NCBI RefSeq assembly: GCF_039654945.1
Contig: NW_027361840.1
Span: forward strand, 10,664,001 to 10,728,000
DNA length: 64,000 nt
Source: Dendrobates tinctorius
Lineage: Eukaryota
Reading direction: 5' to 3'
Shown here: piece after piece, positions 9,514 to 56,963 of the stretch
Layout of the letters: each line of letters begins with the position of its first letter
Numbering within the stretch: the first letter of the stretch is position 1
The notes under the pieces: generated by a model
What the model saw: only the letters and a program-made list of their open reading frames with translations
Database searches by the model: none
What the model was told of the DNA's origin: nothing
Made by a program: the position numbers and the translations under genes

Positions 9514-9549
9514 ATGGAGCGCCCGTTGATTTCGGAGACTCTGGCGCAG
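9514..9549 (+). CDS. KRAB gene coding exon 1 ([12 protein letters not shown])
   Basis: AACATGG strong Kozak context in the CpG island; donor CAG|GTAGGA, phase 0, matches the phase-0 start of the KRAB-A exon. Confidence 0.75.
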
Positions 9550-12500
9550 GTAGGACCGTGCTCGGCGGCCTGGTGTGAGGAGAACGGCGCTGCTGTGCTC
9601 CGTGTGGTGTTATCTCTAGGAGCCGCCATAGATACGGAGCGGAGGGGTTAATAGAGCGTGAGGGGAGCGCTGCTGTGCCCGGAGCGGCCTGCAGGGGCCG
9701 CTGGTGGGTGCCGTCCCCTATACAATCTATAGGGCCCCGAATTTACATAGAAACGGATGATCCCGTGAGGTGAAAAGAGCTCTCCCCACCATCTATAGCA
9801 TAGACCCCCACATACAGGACCCCCAGATACAGAAACCCCCCTGTATACAGAGCTCCCCACCATCTATAGCATAGACCCCCACATACAGGACCCCCAGATA
9901 CAGAAACCCCCCTGTATACAGAGCTCCTGACCATCTATAGCATAGACCCCCGCATACAGGACCCCCAGATACAGAAACCCCCCTGTATACAGAGCTCCTG
10001 ACCATCTATAGCATAGACCCCCGCATACAGGACCCCCAGATACAGAAACCCCCCTGTATACAGAGCTCCCCACCATCTATAGCATAGACCCCCACATACA
10101 GGACCCCCAGATACAGAAACCCCCCTGTATACAGAGCTCCTGACCATCTATAGCATAGACCCCCGCATACAGGACCCCCAGATACAGAAACCCCCCTGTA
10201 TACAGAGCTCCCCACCATCTATAGCATAGACCCCCACATACAGGACCCCCAGATACAGAAACCCCCCTGTATACAGAGCTCCTGACCATCTATAGCATAG
10301 ACCCCCGCATACAGGACCCCCAGATACAGAAACCCCCCTGTATACAGAGCTCCCCACCATCTATAGCATAGACCCCCACATACAGGACCCCCAGATACAG
10401 AAACCCCCCTGTATACAGAGCTCCTGACCATCTATAGCATAGACCCCCGCATACAGGACCCCCAGATACAGAAACCCCCCTGTATACAGAGCTCCTGACC
10501 ATCTATAGCATAGACCCCCGCATACAGGACCCCCAGATACAGAAACCCCCCTGTATACAGAGCTCCTGACCATCTATAGCATAGACCCCCAGATACAGAA
10601 ACCCCCCTGTATACAGAACTCCCCACCGTCTATAGCATAGACCCCCACATACAGGACCCCCAGATACAGAAACCCCCCTGTATACAGAGCTCCTGACCAT
10701 CTATAGCATAGACCCCCGCATACAGGACCCCCAGATACAGAAACCCCCCTGTATACAGAGCTCCTGACCATCTATAGCATAGACCCCCGCATACAGGACC
10801 CCCAGATACAGAAACCCCCCTGTATACAGAGCTCCTGACCATCTATAGCATAGACCCCCGCATACAGGACCCCCAGATACAGAAACCCCCCTGTATACAG
10901 AGCTCCTGACCATCTATAGCATAGACCCCCAGATACAGAAACCCCCCTGTATACAGAACTCCCCACCGTCTATAGCATAGACCCCCACATACAGGACCCC
11001 CAGATACAGAAACCCCCCTGTATACAGAGCTCCTGACCATCTATAGCATAGACCCCCACATACAGGACCCCCAGATACAGAAACCCCCCTGTATACAGAG
11101 CTCCTGACCATCTATAGCATAGACCCCCGCATACAGGACCCCCAGATACAGAAACCCCCCTGTATACAGAGCTCCTGACCATCTATAGCATAGACCCCCG
11201 CATACAGGACCCCCAGATACAGAAACCCCCCTGTATACAGAGCTCCCCACCATCTATAGCATAGACCCCCACATACAGGACCCCCAGATACAGAAACCCC
11301 CCTGTATACAGAGCTCCTGACCATCTATAGCATAGACCCCCGCATACAGGACCCCCAGATACAGAAACCCCCCTGTATACAGAGCTCCTGACCATCTATA
11401 GCATAGACCCCCGCATACAGGACCCCCAGATACAGAAACCCCCCTGTATACAGAGCTCCTGACCATCTATAGCATAGACCCCCAGATACAGAAACCCCCC
11501 TGTATACAGAACTCCCCACCGTCTATAGCATAGACCCCCACATACAGGACCCCCAGATACAGAAACCCCCCTGTATACAGAGCTCCTGACCATCTATAGC
11601 ATAGACCCCCGCATACAGGACCCCCAGATACAGAAACCCCCCTGTATACAGAGCTCCTGACCATCTATAGCATAGACCCCCAGATACAGAAACCCCCCTG
11701 TATACAGAACTCCCCACCGTCTATAGCATAGACCCCCACATACAGGACCCCCAGATACAGAAACCCCCCTGTATACAGAGCTCCCGACCATCTATAGCAT
11801 AGACCCCCAGATACAGAAACCCCCCTGTATACAGAACTCCCCACCGTCTATAGCATAGACCCCCACATACAGGACCCCCAGATACAGAAACCCCCCTGTA
11901 TACAGAGCTCCCGACCATCTATAGCATAGACCCCCACATACAGGACCCCCAGATACAGAAACCCCCCTGTATACAGAACTCCCCACCGTCTATAGCATAG
12001 ACCCCCACATACAGGATCCCCAGATACAGAAACCCCCCTGTATACAGAGCTCCCGACCATCTATAGCTTAGACCCCCACATACAGGACCCCCAGATACAG
12101 AAACCCCCCTGTATACAGAGCTCCTGACCATCTATAGCATAGTGCCTATAAGGATGTGCTGTATACATCACTGAAGCTGCGCAGGAGGCTTCCATCAACA
12201 TACGGGACCCCCCTGTATACAGAACTCCAGACCATCTATATATAGCATGGAGTCTGACCCCCACATACAGGACCCCCTGTATACAGGACTCCCGACCATC
12301 TGCGCAGGATGCTTCTATTAAATCCCCAGGACCCACAGACACAGAAACCCCCCTCCCCACGTACAGGACTCCCCAATCATCTATAGCATAGTCTATAGGG
12401 ACGTCCTGCATACATCACTGGTGCTGCACAGGTTGGCTCTATCAACATACAAGACCCCCAGATACAGGGCTCCCCCATACAGAACCCCCTGCATCCAGTC

Positions 12501-22734: not shown

Positions 22735-22765
<31 letters not shown>

Positions 22766-23095
22766 GTGAAAGAGGAAAATTGTCGGAGTTATTTTTTTTT
22801 TAAATAAAGGACTTTTGAATGTGTTTGTCGACTACGGGGTTAATAATGGGGTTGTTTGAAAGACGCATCTCCATTACTAACCCAAGTGTTTGATGTAAGC
22901 TGTTGACATCGACCCCGATTTGGCAATTGGGAAGAGCCGAGGCTCAATTTCTGGTGCGGCTAAGGTCTGGTTTTATTGGACTGGGAAGGGGCCAATATCC
23001 TTGGCTTTTCCCTGCCTTTTAATATCAGCCCCTGCCTGTGTGCCTTGCCCTAGCTTATTAATAAAAATAATTTAAAAAAAAAATGGGGAGACCCC

Positions 23096-23127
<32 letters not shown>

Positions 23128-29100: not shown

Positions 29101-29597
29101 GACTGCGACATCATCAAAGGTCTCGCAAGGCATTACTGGGAACAGGAGCGTCGCTGAGGCCCGGGAAGGCTGCGCGGGATGCTGGAAGGTGAATATAACA
29201 CCATTTTTTATTCTATTTTTTTTTTTTCACAGGGATCTGGTACCCAAAGCCCGGAGGACAGTCTCCTCTCCTCCGGACCGTGGGTACCATCCGCAAATGT
29301 TCTGCTTACTTTTCGGATAAGTGGAACAATGCAATCCTATGGGTGCGGGATCGCTGCGATTCCGCAAAATAATGAGCATGCTGCGGATTTCTCCACTATG
29401 CGATTCCACCGCTGGAAAATCCGCAGCATTGCGGAATCCCATAGGATTGCATGGGATGCTGTGTTTTTTGCGTTTTCGCGGCAAAATCACGCGTTAAAAA
29501 CGCTGTGAAAGCGCAAAAAAAGCGACGTGTGGACGCATCCTTAATGTTTCGACTATAAATAGGTGGGGACATTAGTTGTAACATTTGTGTGTGTGTG

Positions 29598-29645
<48 letters not shown>

Positions 29646-32271: not shown

Positions 32272-32358
<87 letters not shown>

Positions 32359-35300
32359 TAAATACTCCATATTAATATCCATATATAACAAAATAAGTTG
32401 TGGAATTTTTGACACAGAGCACTAGGCTTAGTGCTAAACTAATTTTTCCTGTTCTCTCCAATGACTTTTCAGTAGTCTTATTATCATCACAGACATGGAT
32501 ACAATGACTCGTAATGCCTCTATATATTGTAGATAGCTCACTAAAGTACTGTTACTGGTCTTTGAACTCCTGACTCTTCTGATAAAGAGCCTGCTGAAAA
32601 GTATACTTCAGGCATTGTCAGGTTGGCAGTGTTAAATTGATTAAAATGATACCTGGGGTGAAGACCTCAGTCTTGTGGTTATAGTGTAATCAGTGTTAGA
32701 AATTTTCAGTTAATGACATGCCTGTGCTCCGAGGCGGGACTGTAGGCAGAATCTTATCTTCAGAGAGACCTGCCCACAGGCCGCCCCAGCACATCAGTCT
32801 GTGCGTCTGTCTCTGAGGAGGAACATGTTTGTGCATGGGGGCAGCCTGTAGGCAGGTGTCTCTTTGGGTCTCTCTGGTTTAGAGAAGGAAGATAGAATTT
32901 GTGCCCATAGTTTTGCCCTGGAGCACAGGCATCTCCTTATCTGAAAACTTTTAACATTGATTACACAAGAACAACAGGACAGATTTCTTCACCCCAGATA
33001 TCATTTTAAACCGTTTAAACACTGCCAGCCTGACATTGTCTGTAGTTTACTTGGCAAAATCCTGCTGACTTTTCTTAAAACGAACCTGCTTTAAGGAGAA
33101 AAAAAAAACACTTCTCAGAGGCTGTATCATGATTTCCTTAAATCAAAATTCTAAATTTTTTTTTCTTTCATTATTTTTAGTTATCCATATTTCCAAAAAT
33201 AATATCCCCAGACTAATACACTATTATATAAAGCATAACAACCCTTTGCGCTGTCCGAGGATCCCTAACCCTGCTGCCAATCAATTCTGTACGTGACTGT
33301 ATCCTCAGTATAAAAAATATACATTTTATTGGAGACAATTAATAGAAAATTGCAGTAAAACTTACATCTTCTCACTGTTTATCTCAAAATAAAAAACAAT
33401 ATCAATTATAATTGGCATAAAAAAAAGCCAGAATGATGAACAATCCCTTTTCGAGTTTGTGCAGTCCTTGATTGATTGGACACTGCTCCCAATGTTAGGA
33501 GGCTCTTAAAATATGAGAACGTTTCCACGTGGTGATTGTAGTATTTGTGATGAGGCCCCACAGACCCTCGTGCACACGGCAGCACTACAAGGCGGTGACC
33601 TATCGAAGTCCACGAGCCTCTGTGGAATCCATCACCTTATCTTATACATAAGCAGATACAATGTGATCTCTACACATGATGGGTTTGATGCTGGTTTGTA
33701 TACGATTAGACCAAAAGAACAACCTAGCCTCCAAACAAGTGAAAAGTTGCATATTTTTGGGTCTGACCCAAATGGTTTGAATTGAGTGGTGGTCCCTCGT
33801 GAACACCTTCGCTCTATATACTGTTTAGGGGGCTGTGGGACGTTCCCGAGTACCACCCTGTAGGTGGGAGATATGTCATTGTAGCCGTATAAGAGGGTAT
33901 CACAATATATTTCCAATCAGTGACGGCAAGCCAAGAGACATTGTGGTATCGTGAACAGAATATTCCATGGGATCCTCTGCATGTTTTTTGCTCTCTGGCG
34001 TTGAGGATGTTGGGAGTTGCGGTGATGATATCGCTGTCAGGTCATGTTTGCGCTCGTTACCTGGAGAGTCCCCCAGCGGTGTATTAGACTTTGTGGTGCG
34101 AATCATTTACACTCCACACATTAAATATTTCTCTTTTATTTGCTAATTATTTTCCACTAATTGCTTCTTTGAGAGCTTAATAGCCGTGCGTGTAAAGTTT
34201 CCTAATTGCCATGTAATTATTCACTGTGAGCGCGTGTATGAGAGAGAGCGAAAATAAATCTGTCTCTGGGCTGAAGGTTCGCTCCTTCTGGAGATGTTAG
34301 GAGCTAAAAGTCTCAGCTCTTCACGCTAGTTCTTAAAGGGATTATTTAAGTCATTTTGTGCAGGGATATGTCCACACGACCTAGGATACTTGTAATGAAC
34401 CTACAAACATTTTCTCTCTTCCTCTCAGGTGACCTTTGATGATGCCGCAGTTTATTTCTCAGAGGAACAATGGCAGAACCTGGAGGACTTTCAGAAGAAA
34501 ATATACAAGGAGCTCATCAAGGAAATCTATCAGACTATGCTGGCGCTGGGTAAGGATGGCGGTCATATAGATGTTGGTTATCGGTGATGAGCAAAGCAGA
34601 CAAAATTCTGCCGGTCACTCACGTCAGAGGTGTTCCCGATGCAAAACATCTCCCACCATTTTGCTGAAATCCACACAAAAGAATCAGAGCATTGGGAGCG
34701 GCTGGCTGCTATTTTCCTACCTGTAATAACTCTGTCCATTTCTTGTACTTCACCGGACCTGTGATTTGCTTTTAGGATGAGTCTGTTTAATCCCATGTAA
34801 TTTACCACAAAGCTTAAACTTGTATATCCCCATCTAAAGCTAGTTTCACACTAGTGTATGGCAGAGCTGCGAAGGGATGCGGACTTCCACTGTGAGCCTC
34901 TGCCCACTGCCACACCTCCTCCAGTCTGCTCCACCTACATCTGCAAGCGGCCTGCGTACCTATCTTTAACATTGGGTACGCAGGCCATGCGGATGCCTCC
35001 GCATGCGTCGTTTTGACGGTGCAGCGACCGCAACAAAATACAACACGTTGCGTTCAGTGCAGGTCACCACACCGTCAAAACGACGCATGTGGAGGCATCC
35101 GCATACATCCGCATGGCCTGCATACCCAATGTTAAAGATAGGTACGCAGGCCGCATGCAGATGTAGGTGGAGCTGACTGGAGGAGGTGTGGAAGTGGGCG
35201 GAGCTTCACAAAGGAAGTCCGCAGCTCTGCCATATGCTAGTCTGAAACTAGCCTAAGTAAATCTGCACCAAATGAAGGTGTTTGTCCTGGTGTTTGCTAA

Positions 35301-38300
35301 TGCAGTTCATGGCCAAATAACGGACTTAAGGTCTTCTGGCTATAGCCGCCGGATCAGTAGTTAGAATCCCCTTTTAGGTGGTAAAAATACATTTTTTTTC
35401 TTTTTTTTTTTTTCCAATCGTCTTGTGTCACTTTGCATACTTTCTGAAAAGCATTTGAAGGGTTAATAAACTAACGGAAAGCAATTTTCAATATGTCGAG
35501 AGGCGCTGCTTTTAAAATATTATCACTTTTGGGGGATATATATTGGCCCCCCAAAGTAATTTCAAAACTGAATTGGTCCCTTAAAGTTCTGTAAATTTTC
35601 CTTGCAAAACAATGAAAAATTACTGCTACATTTTTAAACCTTTCAATATGTTAACAAAATGGAGTTGATGTAAAGCAGACATGAGGGAAATGTTATTTAT
35701 TATTGTCTTTGTGTGTTTTGACTGTCTGGATTTAAGAGATAATCAAAGTTTGAAAAATGCTAATTTTTTTTGAAAATTTTTTCTCAAATTTCTGATATTT
35801 TTAGAAATAAACAAAACATATCAACATAAGTTTACCATTATCGTAAAGTATATTGTGCCATGAAAAAACAACGTCCAAATCAATTGGAAATATTGACGCG
35901 TTGCAGAGTTATCGCTACATAAAATGACAATAGTCAGATTTCAAAAATTTGGCCGTCATTAAGGGGTTAAATCAAATTGGTGATATTGTTGTCCAATTTA
36001 GTTCTCTTATTTATTCCATTGTTTTACAGGATATCGCATCCCAAAACCAGACATTGTGTCCCGTATTGAGCGGGGAGAAGAACCATGCGTTGATGCCAGC
36101 AAGAAGTCGAAACAGCAAGAACCACAGCCAGAGGGCACCCCAGATGGCAGCAAAGGTGCGCAGTGTCTATTATATTTCCTAATATTTAATATGCAAATAA
36201 AACTGGAATCATTTCTAAGGTACTAAACTGTCAGGGTAGAAACAAGGGCTTTATAAGCATCTAATTGCCTCTATATACAAGAATATACGGTAACTACTAT
36301 AATGCTGCCCCTATGTACAAGAATATAACTACTATAATACTGCTCCTATGTACAAGAATATAACTACTATAATACTGCCTCCTATGTACAAGAATATAAC
36401 TACTATAATACTGGCCCCTATGTACAAGAATATAACTACTATAATACTGCCCCTATGTACAAGAATATACGGTAACTACTATAATACTGCTCCTATGTAC
36501 AAAAATTTAACTACTATAATACTGCCCCTATGTACAAGAATATAACTACTATAATACTGCTCCCTATATACAAGAATATAACTACTATAATACTGCCTCC
36601 TATGTACAAAAATATAACTACTATAATACTGCCTCCTATGTACAAGAATATAACTACTATAATACTGCCCCTATGTACAAGAATATAACTACTGTAATAC
36701 TGCCCCTATGTACAAGAATATAACTGCTATAATACTGCTCCTATAGTAATTATATTCTTGTACATAGAGGCAGTATTATAGTAGTTATATTCTTGTACAT
36801 AGGGGCAGTATTATAGTAGTTATATTCTTGTACATAGGAGCAGTATTATAGTAGTTATATTCTTGTACATAGGAGCAGTATTATAGTAGTTATATTCTTG
36901 TACATAGGAGGCAGTATTATATACAAGAATATAACTACTGTAATACTGCCCCTATGTACAAGAATATAACTACACTGCGTGCAGAATTATTAGGCAAGCT
37001 GTATTTGAGAGGATTCTTTTTATTATTGAACAACTACACTCACTGGCCACTTTATTAGGTACACCTGTCCAACTGTGTGTTAAGACTTAATTTCTAATCA
37101 GCCAATCACATGGCGGCAACTCAGTGCATTTAGGCATGTAGACATGGTCAAGACAATCTCCTGCAGTTCAAACCGAGCATCAGTATGGGGAAGAAAGGTG
37201 ATTTGAGTGCCTTTGAACATGGCATGATTGTTGGTGCCAGAAGGGCTGGTCTGAGAATTTCAGAAACTGCTGATCTACTGGGATTTTCACGCACAACCAT
37301 CTCTAGGGTTTACAGAGAATGGTCCGAAAAAGAAAAAAAATCCAGTGAGCGGCAGTTCTGTGGCCGGAAATGCCATGTTGATGCCAGAGGTCAGAGGAGA
37401 ATGGGCAGACTGGTTCGAGCTGATAGAAAGGCAACAGTGACTCAAATTGCCACCCGTTACAACCAAGGTAGGCAGAAGAGCATCTCTGAACGCACAGTGC
37501 GTCGAACTTTGAGGCAGATGGGCTACAGCAGCAGAAGACCACACCGGGTACCACTCCTCTCAGCTAAGAACAGGAAACTGAGGCTACAATTTGCACAAGC
37601 TCATCGAAATTGGACAGTAGAAGATTGGAAAAACGTTGCCTGGTCTGATGAGTCTCGATTTCTGCTGCGACATTCGGATGGTCGGGTCAGAATTTGGCGT
37701 AAACAACATGAAAGCATGGATCCATCCTGCCTTGTATCAACGGTTCAGGCTGGTGGTGGTGGTGTCATGGTGTGGGGAATTTTTTCTGGGCACTCTTTGG
37801 GCCCCTTGGTACCAATTGAGCATCGTTGCAACGCCACAGCCTACCTGAGTATTGTTGCTGACCATGTCCATCCCTTTGTGACCACAATGTACCCAACATC
37901 TGATGGCTACTTTCAGCAGGATAATGCGCCATGTCATAAAGCTCGAATCATCTCAGATTGGTTTCTTGAACATGACAATGAGTTTACTGTACTCAAATGG
38001 CCTCCTCAGTCACCAGATCTCAATCCAATAGAGCATCTTTGGGATGTGGTGGAACGGGAGATTCGCATCAGGGATGTGCAGCCGACAAATCTGCGCCAAC
38101 TGTGTGATGCCATCATGTCAATATGGTCCAAAATCTCTGAGGAATGCTTCCAGCACCTTGTTGAATCTCTGCCACGAAGAATTGAGGCCGTTCTGAAGGC
38201 AAAAGGGGGTCCAACCCCTTACTAGCATGGTGTACCTAATAAAGTGGCCAGTGAGTGTATGTTCTCAATCAACCCAAAAGACTCATAAATATCAAAGCTT

Positions 38301-40615: not shown

Positions 40616-40646
<31 letters not shown>

Positions 40647-43600: not shown

Positions 43601-46600
43601 TGCGCCATATATACTGTATTTTTCGGACTATAAGACGCACTTTTTTCCTCCCATAATGTGGAGGAAAATGTGGGGTGCATCTTATAGTCCGGATGTACCA
43701 GCTGTGCTGGGGAGGTAGGGGAGCAGTTTCGGCGGAGCAGTGGGTCACAGAGGCAGGAGCCTGCGGCTAACTCCTGTGCCCGCTGCTAAAGAGAAATGAA
43801 TATTCATTGCATTCCACGCCCATGGGTGTGGAGGGCAATGAATATTCATTTCTTTTTGGCATCCTGGTATGATTGGCCCCATCCCGTTCTTGGTATGCAT
43901 GGCCCCATCACAAAAGATAAAAAAAAATTACACTTACCTTCCTGCGCTCCCTTGCAGCTTCCTGCTTCGGTGCCAGCAGCTGCTTTATGCTTGTGAGCAG
44001 CGCATGGCAGGGACGTCATGCGCTGCTCACAAGCAGATCACAGTTGCCAGTATACTTACCGGGACTGTTCATCGCAGAGAGATTAAGATAAATGAATATT
44101 TACGTGGCCGCCGGCAGCAGCAGCAAGGCTCCGGCTGAGACTGTGTGCGCTACTGAAGAAGAATGAATACTCACTGCTCCCTGCAATGAACAGTCCCGGC
44201 TAGTATTCCGGTAGCTGTGCCTGCTTGTGAGCAGCGTACGACGTCTTGAATGTGGTTTTGAGCACCTTGAGGGGTGCAGTTTTTAGAATGGTGTCTGTCA
44301 CCCCACATGTGATGTGGTCCCTTACAAAAATAAAAAAAATTTTGTTGGAAAAATGACAAATTGCTGCTCAATTTTAAACCTTTCTAATTTACTACTTTAA
44401 CAAAAAGTTTCAAAAATTTCTGATGTAAAGTAGACATGAGACGTGAGAAATGTTATTTATGAATTATGTTGTGTGACATAATCTCATTTAAGGGCATAAA
44501 AATGCCCGCTGCAATAGAAAAACCGGTGAGTGTTGCTTTAGGATGGTAGTCCTGCCTTACATTTCAGCAATGTATCTGATCCATCCTTTATCTCCTTCTT
44601 TCCAGATTCTCAGCCGGTGATTAAGGTGGAGCGGGAGTCTCCAGAAGCCTCCACTCCTATGGCTCCAAGTGAGATTTCCTCATCGCAGGAGCGCAGCGGA
44701 GCTCAGTGCCCACGTTGCGGGATGTTCTGCAATAACCAGTGCAGAATGGGATTTCAGTGGAATGCAACAGGGATGTATCCCACATCTCCTATGGAAGGAA
44801 ATCATGCGAAGCCATATATGACCCCTCCACCTGCTTACTTTAATGGGAGCCCAATATCACCTGGATTTGCCAGTAGGGGCGAAGGAATGTCACATCCCAC
44901 CTCTCCGATGGCTGCTTATGGAAATGCAGGAATGGTTCCTTTGTCTCCACACTATCCTGGTCCCAGCTACAGAAATGCCACCGACCCCAGCCCCCCCTAT
45001 CCAGTGCCAGAGCGGCATGGAAATCAAGTCTTTGCTTATGAGCAAATGCCCATGGGGCCACCCAGTAGTCATGTCGGTAAGTGTCCAGTTAGAAGGAAAG
45101 CTTGAGTCTGTGTCGGTTTGTTGCAGGAACTGGGCTACATTAGTTGTTGACTAATGGCTCTGTCACACACAGCGAGATCGCTGATTTTATGACGCCAAAG
45201 TGATCTCGCCTGCGAGATCGCTGTGTGTGACATGTATCAGCGCCGGCTCCCCCGCCGGGTATCGCTGATCGCACTCCAACGTCCTGGGCCATTTTTTGAT
45301 CATTGGTCTCCCGTTGGCCAGCGCGCATCGCTGCGAGAGACCAACGATCAGCGACACTGGATGGATACCCGCTGTTTACCTTGGATACCAGCTTGCTCAC
45401 TGGTCCTGATCGCTGGTGGGTCTGTCTAACGATGTCCCAGCGATCCCATCCACGTCAGATCGTTGGTGGGATCGCTGGGACATTGAAGCGTGTAACGGGG
45501 CCTTAACATTCCTATTGTCCTGAATAATAGGCTGTGTTATGGAGCGGAACAAGGCATAAGATTGGTGGTAAATCTGACTTTTATCCGTACCTGTATGAAC
45601 TCTTCATGTATGGCCAAAAACAGAAGAAGATATCTCTGCTGAGCGGCAGTACAGACACTGTTTATTCTGGGTCACCCTTGCCATGATTGTTTGTTCCTCT
45701 ACACAATTTTTGATATATTGGTCCAAAATTCTGTGCTGATTCGTTTCTTAAAGGGGTTGTTGGCATTTTTTTTAAATTGTTTTTCAACAAGGCTCGGCAC
45801 CCTACTAAAAATGATTTTAAAAAAAGTCCCTCATTCACCATGGTGCTTCTGGAGTTCCCCACTGTACATCCTATTTTGGTTGTTCAGACATGTGACCAAT
45901 TCAGTCAATCACTGGCTGTGATTTTTCACATGTCTGTCCTTTCCTGAAGAGGAATCCCTGAAACGTGCATTGAACAATGGCATCTCTACAGAGGAATGTC
46001 AGGGGCTCGCTAAGGGCAGTTTCACACGTCAGTATCTCCGGTACGTGTAGTGACAGTTTTCTCACGTATCGGAGACACTGACACACGTAGACACATTCGA
46101 ATGGATGTGTCTATGCAGATGTCAGTGTGTTTTCACGGACCGTGTCCGTGTGCAAAACACGCTGACATGTCCGTTTTTGTGCACCAGCACGGATCACACG
46201 GACCCATACAGGTCAATGGGTCCGTGTAAACACGTACCGCACACGGGTGCTGTCCGTGTGCGATCCGTGTGCGTTTTTCAAAGTCAAAGGGTTAACATTG
46301 AAAATAATTTTTCAAAAACACGGATGGTACTCACGGACATACGGATGTCACACGGATGGCATACGGATGCACACGGACACGGATAGCTCCGGTACCGGTT
46401 TTTCTGGTACCAGAATTATCTGGACATGTGAAACTGCCCTAAGATAGGATACAATTTTATTTTTATATCCTGGTGTTACCTTGTTAAAAAGGGCTGGGCC
46501 GGTGTGGGTAATGGGGCTTTAGTGGTGCATTGTCCACTTCTTCATTGCTTGATGCAGCTGGACCGGAATTTCAGCTCTTCCAAAATGTATAACTTCTGGC

Positions 46601-49600: not shown

Positions 49601-52600
49601 ATGTCCTTCGGCCTCACCAAGGCACCCATGACCTTTCAAGGATTGATGGAGAGATGCTTGGGAGACCTGAATTTTGAGGCTTCCCTCATCTATTTGGATG
49701 ACGTTATCGTCTACGCAGCCACGTTTTGAAGAACACCTGCAATGGCTGGAAATAGTGTTTAGTCGGCTACAGAAGCACGGTCTGAAGGTGAAACCTCGGA
49801 TGTTTCCCCTCTTCCGCCAGCAGATTGAATATCTGGGACATGTTGCATCTGCAGAGACAGTCGCTTGAGAAGATTGCAGCAGTACAGGACTGGCCCACCC
49901 CGAAGACTGTGCAGGATGTCCATGCTTTCTTTTCTGGGACTCACGGGGTACTATCGGCGGTTTGTGAAAATTTTCCCCCGTAACGTAAACTTGCCGCTGG
50001 AGTTGCTAAAAGGTAGGCCGGCCGGTGCAAGGAATCGGACCATCCAGTGGGAAAATGGCCAAGAAGCCGCTTTCCGAGCCCTAAAAATGGCTGATGCACG
50101 TGTACTGTCCTATGCAGACTTCTCGCAACCGTTCATTCTTCACACCGATGGAAGCTTACAGGGATTAGGCACTGTCCTGTCACAAATGCAGGATGGGAAA
50201 GAGCGAGTGATTGCCTTTGCAAGTCGATCTCTCCACGACTCCGAACAAAACCCAGCTAACTACAGTTCTTTCAAGCTGGAACTGCTGGCATTGGTGTGGG
50301 CGATGACCGAGAAATTCGCGGAGTACCTGTTGGGGTCTGAAGTCTTGGTACGCACCGATAACAATCCTCTGGCTCACTTAGAAAATGCGAAGCTAGGGGC
50401 CCTGGAGCAGAGATGGGTGGCCCATATGGCCAAGTACTGATACAAGATCGCCTATCGAAGAGGAGCTGAGAATAGATATGCTGATGTTTCCTGAGTGACT
50501 CACGAGCTACCCGGACCCAATCGAAATGAAGTGCTGGAGGCTGAAGAGATCCCTGAGTTTCGTATTACCACAAGGACGTTGGCGGCAACGCAGGGGCAGA
50601 TTGGGGAGGCGTCCGGGGAAGTACATACTGAGATGCTTCTGTGACGACTGGGTGCGGCTTCAGCAGGAAGATGGAGAATGTGCTCAGATGAGGCAATGGG
50701 TGGCTCTGAAACAACTTCCCAGCAAAAGGGAGTGAGACGCCTTGTCCCTGGGTACGCTGCAGATCCTTCGGCAGTGGAGGAGACTTCAACTGAAAGATGG
50801 CCTACTACATCGGAAAGTCCAGTTGGCACGAGAGTTGGGAGACACCTGACAAGTGGTGCTCCCAGAAAGGCTGTTCGACGAGGTGTCCACAGAAGCTCGA
50901 GAGAGGGGCCCACTTTGGCCAAGAGAAGACGCTCCAGTGGTTGCAGAAGTTGGTCTACCATCCTCTGCTGAAAGCTGCAGTGGATGAAGCCTGTCAACGA
51001 TGCAGGAACTGAGTTAGCTAAACCTCCAGAACAGAGGGCCCCTACATTGTGACTTCTGCTCCCCTCGAAGTGTTTGATCGACTGTAGGTCCAGCTCACCT
51101 TGGATACGAACACTGTCTGGTAATAACCGACCACTTTACTAAATTTGCTGTGGTGACTCGAACCTGGGATCAGACTGCTGAGTCAGCGGCACAGGCCATT
51201 TGCAGAGACTTTATCCAGGTCTACGGCTGCCCGAAGAAGATTCGTTCGGACCAGGGCCGGTGATGGAGGAATTGCACCACATGTATCGAATTGAGAAATC
51301 CAGGATGACACCCTACCATCCACAGAGAAATGGGGCCTGCGAGTGTTTTACCGGACGCTGATTCAGATGTTGAGAACGCTGGAGGAGGACCGGAAACTTC
51401 GCTGGCCTGAGTTCGTGGCTGAATTAGTCTGGATGTACAACAACCGGGTGCATTTCACAACTGGATACACGCCATGCACTCTGCTGTTCGGCGGAAAAGG
51501 GTGAGAAATCACCGAGATGGAACTGGATCCAGAGGAGGACTACCCGCAGGCGGGGGTGTCCACCTGGGTCCGTGAACATCGACACTGTCTGCAGACTCTA
51601 CATTGACTTGTACAGACCAAGTTTCGAGATCCAGAACATCACAATACGATTTGATTTCCCTATGATGGACAGCTCTCAAGGCTGGGGACCAGGTGCTGGT
51701 CCGAGACTAACGTCCTCTAGGCAAGTTGGAAAGCCGGTGGGAAAAGACCCCGTACTGGGTAAAACACCAGGATTGGATCCGAAGGTCATGTCTGCGAAGT
51801 TCAACCTGAAGGGGGGAAAAAGGCTCCCCCCACTAGGGTAGTCCATCAAAACATGCTATGCCCTTTCTTGTCACAAGACCCCCGACCAGCCAGAGGGAGC
51901 ACCAAGCGTTCCTGAAACACCCCCTCCTACAGCTTTCGACTTCAGGAGAGGAACAAGAGCCTGAAACTCCCAAAATAGCTGCTCCATTCAACCTGGGTGA
52001 GTCCCCCGCCCTCGCCTGCGCAACCTAACTCGACTACTCAACCTGACTTGCGCCGCACGGAGCGGTCAACAGCTGGAATACCCCCCAATCGATACAAACA
52101 GGACCAATTCATTTGGTAGCAAATTATCTGAGAGATGGAAGAGTGTCAACGTCTTTTGCAAGAACTCTTTGTCTGTGGAATGGCGAGCAAAAGGAGAGGG
52201 GGAGTGTAAGAAAAAGGATCGGACCGTGGATACCTGTTCTGTGCCGGATCCTGAACAGTCGGGCTTTCGCCTCTTTTCCAGGGAATGTTTAAGGGACCGG
52301 ACTGATCTTGGTATCAGGGAGCAGGGGGTTTGCAGCCTGAGCGCGCACGGAAATGGTCAGACTTTGAGGGAAGAAACAGCATGCAGCGAGGAGAAGCGTG
52401 TGCACTGTCCCTCGAGCATCGTTGCAGCACAGGCCCGCGCCGAGCTTCCCCGCTGCCGACAGCTGAGGCCTTGAATAGAGATGTACAGCGTGTCTGTTGG
52501 TCACCACGAATCAAGGTGCCAAGCACTTCAGCTCTGCAAGTACCGCGCGCGTGCCCCCAAAGAGAGACCGGGTGCAGGACTGTTTTCTGCACCCTGATGC

Positions 52601-55600
52601 CCCCCCCCCCAGTGTATATATTGGGTGCAGAGCTGAAGCTTGCTCCCTCTCGGCCACATCAGCAAATGGACTAGGGGCCGAGCGGAAGGTACCGGATACC
52701 GACCGCTGCCGCCAGAAGACAGATCATCGCTAACCTCTAGCTCACATCAGACAAGTATCATTTGTTGTTCTTCATTGACTTTGCATATTCTTTCCCCCCA
52801 TTTTAACTGTTTTCCTCCCTGCGTGGAGTATCCCTGTGTTAAGTAAAATCATTAATCCTTGCTCTGTCTCTTGTCCTTAGCTGCATCTCGCAACCTGCTC
52901 ACATATACTCAGTTATAAGCTGTCCTGAATATAAGCAGAGGCACCTAATTTCACCACAAAAAGCTGGGAAAACTTATTGACTCAAGTATAAGCCTGGTAT
53001 GCATGGCCCCCTCATCCCCATCCTGATATGCATGGCCCCCCCATCAGAAAAACATTAAAAAAACAAACCATTCTATTTACCTTCCTGGTGCTTTCTCACA
53101 GTATCCTGTTCGGGCTCCAGTAGCTGATTTATGCTTACAATCAGCGCATGGCAGTGACATCATGCACTGCTTATAAGCAAAGGACATCTGCCGTAATACT
53201 CACTGCTCTCCACTCCGAGACTATGGGTGTGTGTGGAACAGTGAATATTGATTGATCTTTAATAGCTGGCATAGTAACCTCAGCTGCTGGCTTGCTGTAG
53301 CGGCCGGGCTATCGCGTGTGACCGTTAGCAAAGGGAATATTCGCTGCTCTCCTCGCCCATGGGAGTGGAGAGCAGTGAATATTAATTCCGTTAAGTCGCA
53401 GTCACACTTCAGAGCCCAGCAGCTGCATGAAGCTGCTGCAGCTAACAGCGTGTCCACTATTAAAGAGAAATGAATATTCACTGCTTTCCACTCCCATGGG
53501 TGTGGAGAGCAGTGACTATTCATTTCTCTTAAGCAGCAGGCACAGGTGTCAGCCGTAGCAGCCGGCTCTTGCCTCCTGTGACTTGCTGCTCTGCCGCTGC
53601 CGCTCCCCCTCCCTCTTATAGTCCAAAAAATACCGTGTGACCCTCACTCAAGTATAATATGAGAGGGACTTTTTCAGCATAAAGAATGTGCTGAAAACTC
53701 TGCTTATACACGAGTATATATGGTACTTATTTTACTAGTTTTGGCGTAAGCATGTTTGGAAAGCTGAACTACAACTACATATGGACATGCTGGTGGTTTA
53801 CTGCACCCAAAGTGATGAGTATTTTAGCTTTTCCATCTACAGGAACATGATCCAACTTTTTTTTTTTTTCTTTTTCATTCTCAAATTTTGTGCAAAAAAA
53901 ACCCAAACACTTGAGGACTGTCAATGCAAAGGTCAGTGTTATACAGTGAGAAAGGTGGACATTTCTGTAAGCAGAACCATTGCAGACAGGACTCTGCTAC
54001 ACACATGTATATAGCGCAGACCCTGAATAGAGTGTGCACACGAAGTAAAGCAGAACCTAATTGGCACAATTTATTTTATCATTTCAGATCTTGAGAACAG
54101 AAATAGGAATCATCTCACTCATATGCGTGATGCAATGTTCCATGATCGGAGGAATCCTTTGTCCCCATGTCCCGGATGCGGAGCTTTTTGCAATAATCAG
54201 TGTGGAATAAACATGCACTGGGAACAAAGGCGGTTGCACCATCCTATGCCGGGGCCAACTGACGGAGCCCAGGGGCATCGATACACTTCTCCTCCCAATC
54301 CATACTATAGTGGTGGAGTCAATTCTGGTCCTTACTCAAATATCCGCCCTCCAGTCAGACATGGAGCCCCTCCAGTGAATGTTCAGGGGAATCCTGGGAT
54401 GATGCCGGTATCCTCACCATATACAGGATATCGTGGGCCTGGGGATTCTAAGTCTCCAAACTTTTTTCCCAATAAGCCAGAGCTCCCTGTGGGCAATGGC
54501 ATCCATGGAAACAACACAGCAGTCTCTTCGCCTCATGGGGCTAACCAGGGTGTGAAGTATGGAATGGTACCTGCAAACAGTAGCGGGAGTCATAGGAGGT
54601 CACAATCTATGTCTCCTCTGGCAGCTCTTGAAACCATGCCGGTGTTTGCAGCCATTAATAGTCCAGGTGCTGTTGGTGACCAGAGGAATAGACATTTACC
54701 CCAAACGGTGACCAGTAGTGATAATGGCAGAGACCGAAACCTGATCCCTTCTTATAACAACAGTCAACAACAACAACTACATTTTTCTATCCATGGTAGC
54801 AAAATTACCAGATTACATCAAGTGACTTCAGCGACTGGGCAACTGAAACCCGGGGAAGCCGCTGTAAATAAGACTGCCTTGCCATTAGATGGAGGGGACA
54901 AAGCTTCCAAACAAGCTCTTCCCTCATCCCCCACTTTTGTTGCTCAAGAAATGAAGCAGGTCATAGTAAATGAAAGTCATGCCACTAAAAGGCCTGCTTC
55001 CCAGACTGCTTCAGAAAGTGGGCTTCCTGTAAAAAGAGCCAGTCCACCAGTGATCATTGTTGACTGTGACGAAAAAAAACGCACTCCAAAGGCAAGATCT
55101 GCTGGGAATAACCAAGGTTCAGCTTGTGTTATGCCTCCAACCACTAAACCAGATCCTCCTGTGATGATTATTGGAATCCCGGCCCCTAAGAAGACTCTGA
55201 CACCTGAAACTAGAGAAAATAGGAGCCAAACACGCCAAACACCACCTATTACCATCAGTAATGTTCGGAGTGCAGGCGAGCCTGAAAAAAGGTGCCCAAC
55301 ACCACCAATCACCATCAGTAATGTTCGTGGTGCCGGAAGTCTGGAAATTAAACAAATGAGGCCCCCAACTCCACCAATTACCATCAGCAACGTTCGGAGT
55401 ACCAGCACTCCTGAAGTGAAAGATAATAAGCGCCAGACACCACCAATTACCATCACCAATATCCGAAGTTCTGGAATTTTTTTCCCTCCGTCTCCCAGAG
55501 GGCCAATAGAAGTAAAGAAGGACTCCAATCCGATCATAATAATTGATGACAAGGATGGGGAAGGAATGGCTGAACCACCACACACGTCTCCCACCAGTAG

Positions 55601-56963
55601 CTCAAATATTGAGCTTAAAACTTCTGCACCTGTGACAACTCAACCAACCAACCCCATAAATAACCGGGAACCTCCTCCTGCTGCTCTGCCTTCCTCAACC
55701 AATAAAACGATCCAAACTCAAGGTGCCCAACAGGGTGGTGCAGTTTTGGTCAATAAAGTTCAGGTGCCACAGCCCTCTCCAATTATTGTCACTGGAGGTA
55801 CAAATCTGGGCAACCAGCAATTGTCTGTCCCCGTGAATGGCAATCAAAGTATCATGTTGACTTTCCCTGTCTCGGTCGGTAGTTCAGGAATCGTGCTTGC
55901 AACACCTCTGAATATTGCAGAAAACCAGATCTCTGGCATAAAACAGAACAACAGAATGACCATTAATAAGAACACAAGACTCGTGCAAACAAATGCCATT
56001 AACACTCCAAGAACTGTCAATCCTAAATTTAGCTCTGTGGCCGTCACACCAGTAATTGGGCAAACAAATACACTTTCTGTACCTCCTGGGCAAGCAAAAC
56101 CTGTGGCCATCAATGTTAACAAAACAGGCACCATCAACAGTGCGCTCGGTGTAAAAAACTCTAACCTTCCAAAGGTTGGTGGTGCAGCCCTCAAGGCCGT
56201 TCCGGTATCTGCTGCGGGAAATCCGCCTGTGGGACAAGCTATTCCACTATTTGTAGATGCTAATTCTGGGTTAATTCTAACTGGATCCGCTGTTCCTTCC
56301 AAGGATAATGTCTCGTCCGGCCTTGGCAATGCAACTGTCGTCACCGTAAATGGGAATGTGGTTGGTGGAAAACTGGCGTTTAGCAACCTTTCTCCTGTAA
56401 ATGGACTTTACATAGGCAATAATTCCCCTGTTGCTCTGGCAGGCAATGCCAATAACTTTAATAGTAAAGGAACATTGAGCATCAACAATCCCACCATCCT
56501 CACCCTGAATGGCAACTTAGGCATTGGCAATTCGGGATCAGTTGCAGCACCAATCGCGAATATTGCTTCTGTCGGTGCAAACAGGACTTTGCAGGTGGCT
56601 GCCCCGACTGCAGCTCCTACTGTGTTGGGTAACGGTAGTCAGCAGAATACAGTGTTTATAAGAAAAATTGGCGAGCAGAGTGTGGTATCCACCCAACCCA
56701 ACAGTGAGCAGCATCCAGCAGTTGTATTGGAAAGACTGTTTAAATGCAGCAAATGTGATCAGAAGTTTAATTCCCTCGAGAACTTGACTTCCCATCAAGC
56801 TGTTCACAGACCCACGGGCGTCCCAGCCAGTGGACATGCTGGTGAATCGGCCTCCAAAAACTCTAACCAAGTACTTCCAGGAACGAGAGAGGATGATGCT
56901 CCGACTATATTGTACACTACACAGGGAGACGACGGCAGCACGGTCTACGTCGTTACAGTATAG
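9514..56963 (+). CDS. KRAB-domain protein with a single C2H2 zinc finger, 1209 aa; join(9514..9549,34429..34549,36030..36155,44606..45076,54088..56963)
   Basis: Five exons with GT-AG sites and phases 0/1/1/1; lengths 36+121+126+471+2876=3630 nt in one open frame ending TAG; KRAB-A and KRAB-B recognisable; small extra exons cannot be excluded. Confidence 0.85.
9781..12140. repeat. 71-bp VNTR (with 56-bp deletion variants) in intron 1
   Basis: Unit CCATCTATAGCATAGACCCCC[A/G]CATACAGGACCCCCAGATACAGAAACCCCCCTGTATACAGAGCTCC(TGA/CCA), >30 copies; the ORF-track periodicity of 71 nt agrees. Confidence 0.95.
12140..12960. repeat. Degenerate longer (~160 bp) units related to the 71-bp VNTR
   Basis: Recurrent CCAGTCCTCCCGACCATCTATACACCATAGTCTATAGGGATGTC...ATCAGATCCCCAGGACCCC blocks. 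Confidence 0.75.
12962..13658 (-). mobile_element. Tc1-type DNA transposon fragment (one TIR plus decayed transposase C-terminus)
   Basis: TA|CAGCTCTGGCAAAAATTAAGAGACCACTG end; ORF 13230..13490 with [12 protein letters not shown]; truncated by a Penelope-like insert. Confidence 0.8.
13659..14140 (-). mobile_element. 5'-truncated Penelope-like element (GIY-YIG C-terminus plus pLTR with degenerate hammerhead)
   Basis: Minus strand reads [23 protein letters not shown], then after a frameshift [22 protein letters not shown] (PLE endonuclease tail); followed by CTGATGAAGAGACCTGAGTAATCTCGAAAGCTGC at 13706-13740. Confidence 0.75.
14578..16211 (-). mobile_element. Tc1/mariner element, DD38E (Intruder-like), long TIRs, decayed transposase
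   Basis: Termini CAGTACAGACCAAAAGTTTG and CAAACTTTTGGTCTGTACTG, inverted repeats >200 bp; ORF 14741..15145 QQDN...SPDLNPIE with 38 residues between D and E. Confidence 0.88.
16510..16903. mobile_element. Non-autonomous palindromic MITE (Harbinger/PIF-like, AGCGAT-rich family)
   Basis: Imperfect TIRs GTCACACTTAGCGAT / ATCGCAGTGTGTAAC; near-identical body at 62809-63177 and a related element at 45155. Confidence 0.7.
17850..18077. mobile_element. Palindromic MITE relic with two inverted CTCF-like motifs
   Basis: GCCACCACTAGGGGGAGC at 17918 and GCTCCCCCTAATGGTGGC at 17985; complementary outer arms. Confidence 0.6.
18237..18910. mobile_element. Degenerate MITE hosting a younger MITE
   Basis: TAA|GGCTATGTTTACAC ... 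GTGTGAACATG imperfect TIRs. Confidence 0.5.
18512..18756. mobile_element. Young palindromic Harbinger-type MITE
   Basis: Perfect TIR GGCCTGTTTCACACTTCCGTTTTT; TTA target duplication on both sides; internal ACGGATCCGT repeats. Confidence 0.88.
19113..19427. repeat. 46-bp tandem repeat, ~7 copies
   Basis: GTGTGACCAGTATAGCCTGAAATTGTTCTCGGCAGCACAT[C/T][A/G]TCCT. Confidence 0.92.
19840..19950 (+). mobile_element. L2/SINE 3'-tail fragment
   Basis: TGTAAAGCGCCATGGAATAAATGGCGCTATATAAAT...AATAATA stem-loop tail like that of the L2 at 1336. Confidence 0.6.
20068..20737. repeat. 32-bp GC-rich VNTR, ~21 copies
   Basis: GTGTCCCCCGGGCCGCCTGTAGTGTTGCC[T/G]CC. Confidence 0.96.
21842..23829. mobile_element. 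T2/Kolobok-like MITE interrupted by a nested element
   Basis: TTAA|AGAGGCGCTCCCATCAAAGT ... ACTTTGATGGGAGGAGTGCTTCT|TTAT with complementary arms. Confidence 0.65.
21998..23628. mobile_element. Non-autonomous hAT-like element
   Basis: Termini TAGGGATCAGTGAACCC and GGGTCCGCTCATCCCTA; internal inverted segments; no 8-bp TSD recognisable. Confidence 0.55.
23893..23982 (-). mobile_element. Penelope-like pLTR relic, same family as 13659, with hammerhead stem II deleted
   Basis: CAGTGGTTGATGCCTTTTAATG...AACTGAAAAGATGGTAACACATTGCAG...TCTCTTCATCAGGC...TAATACAAAATC aligns with 13659-13762. Confidence 0.7.
24645..25265 (-). mobile_element. Non-autonomous Helitron
   Basis: Minus strand: A|TCTACTATAT 5' end; subterminal hairpin CCCGAT-GCGATAGA-ATCGGG; 3' end CTAG|T; inserted between A and T with no TSD; internal ~56-bp tandem repeat at 24878-25058. 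Confidence 0.8.
25827..27553. mobile_element. T2/Kolobok-like MITE with internal insertions
   Basis: TTAA|AGTGAACCTGTGACATCATTTCAAGCATCTAAAC ... GTTTAGATGCTTGAAATGACGTGACAGATCCCC|TTAA. Confidence 0.65.
26185..26765. repeat. ~39-bp G-rich VNTR, ~15 copies
   Basis: GGGGAGG[C/A]TGTGGGGGGGG(G)CCCAGATGCAGTGTATGT. Confidence 0.93.
28020..28163 (+). mobile_element. 144-bp retroposed insert (Penelope-like solo pLTR) with 14-bp TSD
   Basis: TTACTAATTGGACC at 28006-28019 and 28164-28177; starts with a hammerhead-like GAA-GCGC-loop-GCGC-GAAATGGCCGTT; internal AATAAA. Confidence 0.65.
28639..29540. mobile_element. Harbinger-type MITE with long central palindrome
   Basis: TAA|GGCTATGTGCACATGT ... ACGTGTGGACGCATCC|TTA; arms ~28950-29065 and ~29085-29200 are complementary; same family as 40235 and 40980. 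Confidence 0.82.
29785..30076. mobile_element. Penelope-like inverted pLTR relic with degenerate hammerhead in the spacer
   Basis: ~120-bp inverted arms (29785-29904 and ~29955-30076); minus strand 29902-29945 reads GAGACCGTGAAGGCGG-CAGTTGTAA-CCGCCGAAACGCGTAGTCT. Confidence 0.65.
30656..31085. mobile_element. Penelope-like insertion with inverted pLTRs, TSD up to 14 bp
   Basis: GAGATCTGGAGACT duplicated at 30642-30655 and 31086-31099; perfect 114-bp inverted repeat 30725-30838 / 30975-31088 containing a hammerhead core and AATAAA/ATTAAA motifs. Confidence 0.8.
30793..30856 (-). ncRNA. Type I hammerhead ribozyme motif
   Basis: AGUACA-gucucac-GUACA CUGAUGA A GGUC-AUA-GACC GAA ACG-ucuauu-UGU A UGUAC UGUACU: conserved core, 4-bp stem II, 3-bp stem III, GUA site, 5+6-bp bulged stem I; folded by eye. 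Confidence 0.72.
32590..33070. mobile_element. Degenerate palindromic MITE
   Basis: Complementary arms TTGTCAGGTTGGCAGTGTTAAA...ATGATACCTGGGGTGAAGA and TCTTCACCCCAGATATCAT...AACACTGCCAGCCTGACA. Confidence 0.6.
34429..34549 (+). CDS. KRAB gene exon 2: KRAB-A box
   Basis: Polypyrimidine tract+CAG|[40 protein letters not shown](G)|GTAAGG; classic KRAB-A exon, phase 0-1. Confidence 0.93.
34838..35253. mobile_element. Almost fully palindromic Harbinger-type MITE
   Basis: TAA|AGCTAGTTTCACACTAG ... CTAGTCTGAAACTAGCC|TAA; whole body self-complementary. Confidence 0.82.
35420..35970. mobile_element. piggyBac-like non-autonomous element end
   Basis: Ends ...CATTAAGGGG|TTAA; shares GATGTAAAG[C/T]AGACATGAG...AAATGTTATTTAT with 44420-44460; left boundary uncertain. 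Confidence 0.45.
36030..36155 (+). CDS. KRAB gene exon 3: KRAB-B box
   Basis: TTTTACAG|(G)[41 protein letters not shown]|GTGCGC; the KPD..SR.E.GEEP KRAB-B signature; phase 1-1. Confidence 0.92.
37037..38257 (+). mobile_element. Intact Tc1/mariner element, DD36E (Incomer-like), 1221 bp
   Basis: Perfect 29-bp TIR CACTCACTGGCCACTTTATTAGGTACACC; TA TSD on both sides; uninterrupted transposase. Confidence 0.95.
37185..38225 (+). CDS. Tc1-family DD36E transposase, 346 aa
   Basis: N-terminal HTH, GRK motif, [26 protein letters not shown] with 36 residues between the second D and E. Confidence 0.95.
40235..40940. mobile_element. Harbinger-type MITE, opposite orientation to 40980
   Basis: TAA|GGCTGAGTTCACACGT ... 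ACGTGTGAATGAAGCC|TAA. Confidence 0.87.
40980..41820. mobile_element. Harbinger-type MITE, same family as 28639 and 40235
   Basis: TAA|GGCTGGGTTCACACGTA ... TACGTGTGAACGAGGCC|TTA. Confidence 0.87.
41965..42575. mobile_element. Harbinger-type MITE of a different family
   Basis: TAA|GGCCGGGGTCACACT ... AGTGTGACCCCAGCC|TAA. Confidence 0.85.
43614..44250. mobile_element. Non-autonomous TA-target DNA element fragment within a piggyBac-like left end (TTAA|CCCCTTCATGAC at ~43588)
   Basis: TA|CTGTATTTTTCGGACTATAAGACGCAC terminus; complementary arm at 53460-53635; right boundary uncertain. Confidence 0.5.
44606..45076 (+). CDS. KRAB gene exon 4: Cys module copy 1 plus Pro/Tyr/Met-rich region
   Basis: Strong acceptor CCTTTATCTCCTTCTTTCCAG| and donor G|GTAAGT; phase 1-1; frame of ORF 44617..45105; [12 protein letters not shown] homologous to exon 5. 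Confidence 0.9.
45155..45503. mobile_element. MITE (AGCGAT-rich family)
   Basis: TAA|TGGCTCTGTCACAC ... GTGTAACGGGGCCT|TAA. Confidence 0.7.
46014..46439. mobile_element. Harbinger-type MITE
   Basis: TAA|GGGCAGTTTCACA ... TGTGAAACTGCCC|TAA. Confidence 0.85.
46680..52903 (+). mobile_element. Gypsy/Ty3 LTR retrotransposon, decayed
   Basis: LTRs 46680-47328 and 52205-52903 (TGT...AACCTGCTCACA); PBS TGGCGTAGTCAGCAGGAT at 47331 (tRNA-Ser-like); PPT 52189-52204; CCHC knuckle 48151-48192; protease DTG 48302; RT YLDD 49691; RNase H then integrase; many stops and frameshifts. Confidence 0.92.
52904..53725. mobile_element. Non-autonomous DNA element(s), left terminus clipped by the LTR
   Basis: TATACTCAGTTATAAGC ... 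GCTTATACACGAGTATATATGG|TA imperfect TIRs; internal inverted arms. Confidence 0.55.
54088..56963 (+). CDS. KRAB gene exon 5: Cys module copy 2, four [10 protein letters not shown] repeats, low-complexity region, one C2H2 finger
   Basis: Acceptor TTATTTTATCATTTCAG|, phase 1, in frame with the 946-aa ORF 54123..56963; [23 protein letters not shown] at 56739-56807; no TE motifs. Confidence 0.92.

Follow-up and report, generated by a model that had tools for sequence, protein, structure and literature searches.

A single-copy frog gene with a KRAB zinc-finger layout, one C2H2 finger and a putative role as a protein adaptor

KRAB proteins are usually seen as fast-evolving repressors of transposons that bear arrays of zinc fingers. 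Within the KRAB zinc-finger proteins, hereafter abbreviated as KZFPs, the old members with a variant KRAB domain often carry DUF3669 or SCAN domains. KRBA1 (KRAB-A domain containing 1) is a KRAB protein that is long and rich in proline and has no array of fingers. The readers of SUMO with several SUMO-interaction motifs (SIMs), such as RNF4 and ZNF451, combine hydrophobic four-residue cores and acidic flanks in a disordered chain; the consensus of such motifs is a hydrophobic (V/I/L)(V/I/L)x(V/I/L) core that lies, within a disordered stretch, beside residues that are acidic or Ser/Thr. An old subset of KZFPs with variant KRAB is presented as independent of TRIM28 in those passages of PMC9753469 that cite Helleboid et al. 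2019. Lone fingers have also been described in Drosophila, where a single C2H2 finger with an adjacent β-strand dimerises and serves self-association, not DNA binding (bioRxiv 10.1101/2025.09.04.674178).

The locus that we compare here with these systems occupies positions 9514-56963 on the plus strand of a 64-kb stretch of DNA from Dendrobates tinctorius, hereafter called the window, which contains zero runs of N. It is a single-copy frog gene with a KRAB zinc-finger layout (start exon, KRAB-A exon, KRAB-B exon, spacer exon and a large last exon with one finger) and, on balance, we lean slightly towards reading its product as a disordered hub or adaptor with a variant KRAB, acting through protein contacts and not through recognition of DNA sequence.

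Gene model and transcripts

The coding sequence comprises five exons and 3630 nt with the stop codon, giving a protein of 1209 aa that is 100% identical to RefSeq XP_073407339.1 (here P0001), an "uncharacterized protein" of Dendrobates tinctorius retrieved by a word-based search with the large open reading frame as query. The gene spans 47,450 bp, identical to the annotated span in GCA_039654945.1 (9514-56963), and is not the hidden gene of the original prediction, since it is already annotated under the accession given above. Two open reading frames were visible beforehand, the large one at 54123-56963 and another at 44617-45105. When the exons were mapped by tblastn of P0001 against the window, with inspection of each boundary, the five exons, the junctions at 44606 and 54088 and the length of 1209 aa all proved to have been predicted exactly.

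The coding part of exon 1 (9514..9549, +) contains the start codon among its 12 codons, aligns in tblastn with 100% identity to residues 1-13 of P0001 and runs from ATG to CAG/gtagga, with the GT donor at 9550. A CpG-island-like promoter region (9200..9800) lies over this exon, with a GC content of 0.56-0.66 and a CpG observed/expected ratio of 0.77-1.23 in 200-bp bins, the ratio in the flanking bins being at most 0.72 upstream and 0.09-0.17 downstream. Exon 2 (34429..34549, +; cag/GTGACC to CTGG/gtaagg) encodes the KRAB-A box, recognised by Pfam KRAB, and exon 3 (36030..36155, +; acag/GATATC to AAAG/gtgcgc) encodes an acidic/basic linker and the KRAB-B box, which aligns to KRAB-B of ZNF568 and ZNF93 (7w5q and 7z36). 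Exon 4 (44606..45076, +; ccag/ATTCTC to GTCG/gtaagt) is an in-frame cassette of 157 codons with a sumoylation-type site and the first of two Cys modules (tblastn 100%, residues 95-251), and the last exon, exon 5 (54088..56963, +; tcag/ATCTTG to the stop), contains 958 codons plus the stop (tblastn 100%, residues 252-1209). All introns are of the GT-AG type, with phase 0 after exon 1 and phase 1 after exons 2, 3 and 4.

Exon 4 is symmetric (471 nt). Annotated isoforms of Phyllobates terribilis and Xenopus laevis leave out precisely this exon, and with it residues 95-251 and 93-250, respectively, so that the first Cys module may be dispensable. Past the stop codon, the first three polyadenylation-signal hexamers stand at 57864, 58315 and 58803, which suggests that the 3'UTR extends over at least about 0.9 kb, resembling the UTRs of 0.6-1 kb in the intronless contigs L004-L006.

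Expression was followed in contigs of four public sequencing runs, three of organism A and one of the related organism B, from three studies, which were mapped to positions 33800-36800. The joint between exons 2 and 3 (34548/9 to 36029/30, with GT..AG ends) is present in all four runs and, in X1 and X3, the bins immediately upstream and downstream of exon 2 have zero depth; spliced joint and empty introns together indicate that the contigs derive from spliced RNA. The X1 contig that bears the joint is 3731 nt long, with exon 2 at 63-185 and exon 3 at 186-312. The 65 nt that precede exon 2 fit 36 nt of coding sequence plus 29 nt of 5'UTR, and the 3419 nt that follow exon 3 fit 471 + 2876 + 72, so that the contig, the remainder of which lies outside the mapped region, fits the length of the full five-exon mRNA with short UTRs. 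Of the junctions for which RNA evidence had been sought, that between exons 2 and 3 is hence seen directly in four runs, and those between exons 1 and 2, 3 and 4, and 4 and 5 of D. tinctorius rest on the length of the X1 contig and on conservation. Additional evidence comes from Logan contigs of 4281, 5094 and 5089 nt from other sequencing runs, which contain uninterrupted reading frames that translate exactly to family members of 1212 aa and 1335 aa, with the KRAB at one end and a full-length match to the finger-and-tail region. In genomes, these genes extend over 20 kb or more, and the intronless contigs are therefore mRNAs. The five-exon gene is real and expressed.

Mobile elements are found in and around the gene. 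About 4.5 kb upstream of exon 1, a LINE ORF2 (2031-4988, -) has an open reading frame of 985 aa with Exo_endo_phos and RVT_1 domains and looks intact, and intron 3 contains a Tc1/mariner reading frame (37185-38225, +) encoding an open transposase of 346 aa with HTH_Tnp_Tc3_2 and DDE_3, possibly a young copy. The original prediction had taken the intact large exon among decayed transposable elements as a sign of selection, an argument that fails with these neighbouring frames still open. A fragment of an LTR retrotransposon with RT-RNase H (RT_RNaseH, E=1.5e-26) is found in intron 4 (49865-50440, +). Of note, a repeat in intron 3 (36224-36800) reaches a summed contig depth from thousands to about 600,000 in all four runs and probably belongs to an abundant, transcribed repeat family.

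The KRAB domain and its TRIM28-contact positions

The protein contains, in this order, KRAB-A/B, two Cys modules, tandem repeats, an Asn/Val/Gly-rich stretch, one C2H2 finger and a C-terminal tail, an architecture that Pfam, pattern scans and BLASTP confirm to be as real and as unusual as predicted. The KRAB domain (PF01352) is recognised by Pfam at residues 13-53 with E=9.7e-12 and 44.8 bits, against a cut-off of 20.4, and passes the threshold also in the orthologues of Ascaphus, Xenopus and Rana. Its A and B boxes align to those of ZNF568 (PDB 7w5q, E=1e-11) and ZNF93 (7z36, E=6e-10), and the whole domain is nearly unchanged across frogs. Simple regular expressions for KRAB gave zero matches in the translated window, because the domain departs here from the consensus.

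This departure can be followed at the positions that contact TRIM28, in ZNF93 numbering. D8, F13, W18, L21, Y29 and E35 are kept (frog D17, F22, W27, L30, Y38 and E44, respectively) and I11, V32 and M33 are conservatively replaced by V20, L41 and I42. Different residues are found in place of V9 (A18), E17 (Q26), L34 (K43) and N36 (I45), and these four changes are fixed across frogs with the exception of Rhinophrynus, in which a Val follows the A18 position. With respect to the 12 residues that standard TRIM28-binding KRAB domains need for silencing and KAP1 contact, the frog domain thus deviates at V9, E17 and N36. All three are required for silencing: V9 is buried in the KRAB-KAP1 complex's core and silencing is lost when it is mutated, E17 makes a salt bridge with K296 of KAP1 and every substitution of it abolishes silencing, and E35 and N36 provide essential polar contacts (PMC9753469). 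The rules of this interface probably transfer between species, since the KRAB of the frog protein XFIN binds human TRIM28 and acts as a repressor in cells of frog as well as human origin (PMC3912051), a result that shows the interface to be common to these species and not how the one-finger KRAB behaves. The frog-wide replacement of three silencing-essential positions makes a variant KRAB more likely and, measured against the requirements of mammalian KRAB domains, this variant would probably have weak or no binding to TRIM28.

The alternative is that the protein works as a TRIM28-recruiting KRAB repressor, targeted to chromatin by its partners or by its single finger and relying on the conventional co-repressor. 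Such a function would be in keeping with the score above the Pfam threshold, with the six residues kept and the three replaced conservatively, and with the existence of KRAB-TRIM28 repression in frogs (PMC3912051); moreover, the B box looks canonical and, together with the strong conservation of the KRAB, suggests that TRIM28 binding may persist. We nevertheless consider this alternative unlikely, given that all frogs have A, Q and I at the three silencing-essential positions and that one of these, E17, tolerates no substitution (PMC9753469).

Distribution in frogs, conserved modules and short motifs

Orthologues of the gene are found in 28 frog entries that include Ascaphus, Discoglossus, pipoids, pelobatoids and Neobatrachia. 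In 25 of the 25 species checked, from Ascaphus to Neobatrachia, the protein has KRAB-A/B, usually two Cys modules, one finger and an identical C-terminus of 12 residues. (The N-terminus of the Bufo bufo model, P0006, fails to align with the KRAB of other species, possibly an annotation problem.) The same exon layout is seen in Anomaloglossus, to which all five exons map, and in Xenopus tropicalis, in which tblastn recovers exons 2-5. A maximum likelihood tree (quick search) of 27 sequences shows one copy per species plus two copies in X. laevis, and recovers Neobatrachia, Ranoidea, Hyloidea, Myobatrachoidea, Pipoidea and Pelobatoidea, the accepted major groups of frogs. The presence of the gene in the early-branching Ascaphus indicates that it has been kept since before the frog crown group. 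Comparison of D. tinctorius with Anomaloglossus puts dN/dS at 0.19 in exon 4 and at 0.22 in exon 5, at a dS of 0.35-0.42, with the lowest value (0.06) at residues 973-1072; purifying selection, as originally proposed, is supported by these ratios.

The database names of the orthologues are uninformative ("uncharacterized protein", "hypothetical protein" or labels driven by composition) and no mention of the clear Xenopus orthologues (LOC100486247 in addition to LOC108718652 and LOC108719787) was found in a literature search for these locus identifiers, in agreement with the predicted uncharacterised status. The family had been tentatively proposed to be an amphibian one; what stands is an uncharacterised family, which profile and word-based searches detect in frogs only and not in other amphibians. 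For these searches, a profile of 17 orthologues, without KRAB and with the finger included, was compared with 1.84 billion representative proteins. Among the best 150 matches, those outside the finger are six full-length frog representatives and two fragments closely resembling ranid orthologues, and all other matches listed, of at least 54 bits, are multi-finger proteins aligning at profile positions about 1018-1045. Since the finger was kept in the profile and the matches listed below about 140 bits are multi-finger proteins, non-finger relatives under about 54 bits could be masked. Word-based searches with the tail plus finger (residues 1128-1209) and with the Cys-module region (residues 112-345), covering annotated proteins of 0.55-1.75 times the query length (665-2115 aa), also retrieved frogs only. 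Regarding synteny, neither Xenopus nor Dendrobates has a called neighbour within 10 kb; a partial neighbour in Anomaloglossus has no recognisable open reading frame. By sequence comparison, the family is without detectable relative outside frogs (Anura) among the proteins searched.

Such a restriction could also be an artefact of search sensitivity, if the gene were orthologous to some known vertebrate gene but so diverged that only short islands are still conserved. The crowding of the profile matches by multi-finger proteins below about 140 bits, the length range of the word-based searches and the lack of an informative neighbour within 10 kb leave room for this explanation, which we regard as improbable: no non-frog protein aligns outside the finger among the listed matches of at least 54 bits, none in the range of 665-2115 aa has words in common with the tail or with the Cys modules, and no Pfam family besides KRAB and C2H2 fingers lies above threshold. 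Equally, no well-characterised gene with the same architecture, an orthology that would have spoken against the original prediction, emerged from profile, word-based or Pfam searches.

Between the KRAB and the finger, the most distinctive elements are the Cys modules. The first (residues 129-140; 44707..44742, +) has the pattern C-x2-CG-x2-CNNQC and its four Cys are invariant in 17 species; the second (residues 279-290; 54168..54203, +), also with invariant Cys, is a duplicate of the first. The two match each other in BLASTP with E=2e-12 and 29% identity over 144 aa, each opening a unit of about 140 aa rich in Pro and Tyr, a relationship that at the sequence level is that of an old internal duplication. 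Neither Pfam nor PDB families were matched by the modules, for a profile of their region against PDB gave only C1-domain matches with non-significant E of about 4, and an ESM Atlas feature search returned no usable match for this region, with scores of at most 0.86 for the whole protein. Their cysteines presumably form metal-binding knuckles. In Pfam searches of four orthologues, no DUF3669, SCAN or KRBA1-type domain is matched at E<=0.1.

Disorder is predicted for nearly the whole protein. In AlphaFold2, the pLDDT averages 33 across residues 795-1209 (the C-terminal 415 aa) and 45 across residues 100-345, values that are no proof of disorder since the input consisted of frog alignments of just 17-20 sequences, without metal; the confidence of the model is usable for the finger and, more weakly, for a C-terminal β-hairpin, and for nothing else. 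The Asn/Val/Gly-rich region (residues 801-1127; 55734..56714, +), with 13% N, 12% V and 11% G and a pLDDT below 50, includes short conserved blocks resembling β-strands. In the disordered middle of the protein, Rana temporaria (P0014) and Discoglossus pictus (P0027) show private tandem expansions of short units rich in Asn, Ser, Pro and Arg.

Several short motifs are conserved along the predicted disordered chain. IKVE (residues 100-103; 44620..44631, +) corresponds to the sumoylation pattern psi-K-x-E, which is kept in 17 of the 17 aligned frogs with K101 and E103 invariant, and is followed by xxSP in most species. Two cores with an acidic flank follow the SIM pattern at the sequence level: VIIVD (residues 573-577; 55050..55064, +), kept in 14 of 17 species, and IIIIDD (residues 734-739; 55533..55550, +), kept in all 17. 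Patterns as short as these can arise by chance, their conservation being what speaks for function, and they point most plausibly to the SUMO system.

Four repeats of the form TPPITI[ST]N[VI]R, a unit of 10 residues (individual letters not shown), span residues 637-708 (55242..55457, +). Tandem Repeats Finder detected no array at the DNA level in exon 5. One copy is present in most non-hyloid frogs and 3-6 copies in several hyloids including dendrobatids, species ranging from 0-1 to 6. Given their resemblance to P-x-I-x-I-T, their location in a region of low predicted confidence and the conservation of one copy in most frogs, the repeats might be taken for a multivalent array of calcineurin-docking (PxIxIT) sites, and the protein for a calcineurin scaffold or substrate. 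We find this very improbable, because the published loose pattern P[^PG][FILV][^PG][FILV][^PG] (bioRxiv 10.1101/632547) fits in neither register, PPITIS having Pro at position 2 and PITISN Thr at position 3, and because the copy number falls to 0-1 in many species while rising to 6 in others.

The single C2H2 finger (residues 1136-1158; 56739..56807, +) is matched by Pfam zf-C2H2 with E=7.6e-4 and 20.2 bits, below the cut-off of 25.2, yet conforms to the canonical pattern C-x2-C-x3-F-x5-L-x2-H-x3-H, of which C, C, F, H and H are invariant among 17 aligned frogs. AlphaFold2 models it with a pLDDT of 81-83, and the best matches in a structure search are all C2H2 fingers, with a best Z of 3.5 and every Z below 4; IKZF1 ZF2, for instance, has Z 3.3 and an rmsd of 1.4 Å over 30 residues. 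Positions 3 and 6 of the finger helix vary among frogs, which argues against a conserved DNA target, with position 2 (Glu) and the structural residues fixed; all the same, a lone finger can contribute to nucleic-acid binding. The tail beyond it (residues 1190-1209; 56901..56960, +) ends in 18 residues (letters not shown) that are invariant in the alignment of 17 species, the last 12 being identical in 25 species. It contains DDGST followed by VYVV and is predicted to form a β-hairpin, with strands at 1191-1197 and 1203-1208 (pLDDT 52-71).

It is hardly credible that the form with one finger arises by mis-joining or is a minor isoform, the main product using another last exon with a finger array: the window does end 7 kb past the stop codon, leaving farther exons beyond the reach of the sequence, but the pattern C-x2-C-x12-H-x3-5-H occurs once in its six frames, with no second C2H2 pattern in any of them, the 3731-nt RNA contig has the length of the five-exon mRNA, full-length intronless contigs of other runs end in the same tail, and the models of 25 out of 25 species have exactly one finger, hence no tandem array of the KZFP kind, and the same C-terminus. 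On the six-frame scan of the window and the 25 orthologue models, we reject a hidden finger-array exon; the alternative last exon of this kind, named at the outset as a finding that would count against the prediction, is absent from both.

Proposed role and comparison with known systems

The disordered adaptor that we favour slightly would have a series of candidate contacts along its length. These include the strongly conserved KRAB-A/B domain, the two duplicated four-cysteine knuckles, presumably binding metal, the psi-K-x-E-x-x-S-P site of the sumoylation type, the two hydrophobic, SIM-like cores with their acidic flanks and, towards the end of the protein, the lone finger with the invariant C-terminal β-hairpin after it. 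Such a role would fit both the prediction of disorder and the short motifs that frogs conserve.

A bolder version of this proposal seems to us possible but rather doubtful. It holds that a KRAB zinc-finger gene lost its array before the frog crown group and became a TRIM28-free, DNA-blind disordered hub, in which the C-x2-CG-x2-CNNQC metal knuckle and the C-terminus of finger plus invariant β-hairpin would be new modules, and the conserved acceptor site together with two or more SIMs would provide a connection to SUMO. If this were true, the protein would be an adaptor in chromatin or signalling, restricted to one lineage and equipped with new types of domain.

The interest of the more cautious adaptor reading lies in the opposition between this gene and the usual picture of KRAB proteins, for it is single copy, of pre-crown age and under purifying selection, and combines a single finger with a KRAB that is out of line with the rules of TRIM28 binding. 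It may thus offer a natural test of what a KRAB does when uncoupled from the finger array and, probably, from TRIM28. It has in addition two conserved modules without a described family, and its Xenopus orthologues make knockout and interaction experiments feasible.

With KZFPs such as ZNF93, ZNF568 and Xenopus XFIN, the frog protein shares an N-terminal KRAB with its A and B boxes encoded by separate exons, a last exon of large size and a C2H2 finger of canonical pattern. It differs from them in having one finger instead of an array and about 1000 residues of frog-specific sequence predicted to be disordered, in being encoded by a gene that is single copy across Anura and not by a member of a fast-turnover cluster, and in the replacement of three TRIM28-critical residues. 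With KRBA1 it has in common that it is a long KRAB protein, rich in proline and devoid of a finger array, but there is no Pfam match to the KRBA1 repeat (E<=0.1), and the frog protein adds a B box, the two Cys modules, its one finger and the tail. Its likeness to RNF4 and ZNF451 is one of motif pattern, since no sequence relation was found and the frog protein has neither a RING nor a finger array. The dimerising fingers of Drosophila resemble it as lone C2H2 fingers with conserved β-strand elements, but they are N-terminal, carry a CGEx motif that the frog finger lacks and are stated to be Diptera-specific, whereas the frog hairpin lies about 30 residues past the finger, at the C-terminus, unlike the finger-strand class. 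The TRIM28-independent old KZFPs keep their finger arrays, and a profile search detected no relation to them beyond the KRAB; as far as the passages citing Helleboid et al. 2019 portray them, they nonetheless resemble the frog gene in being old and conserved, with a KRAB that is off consensus at the positions of contact with TRIM28.
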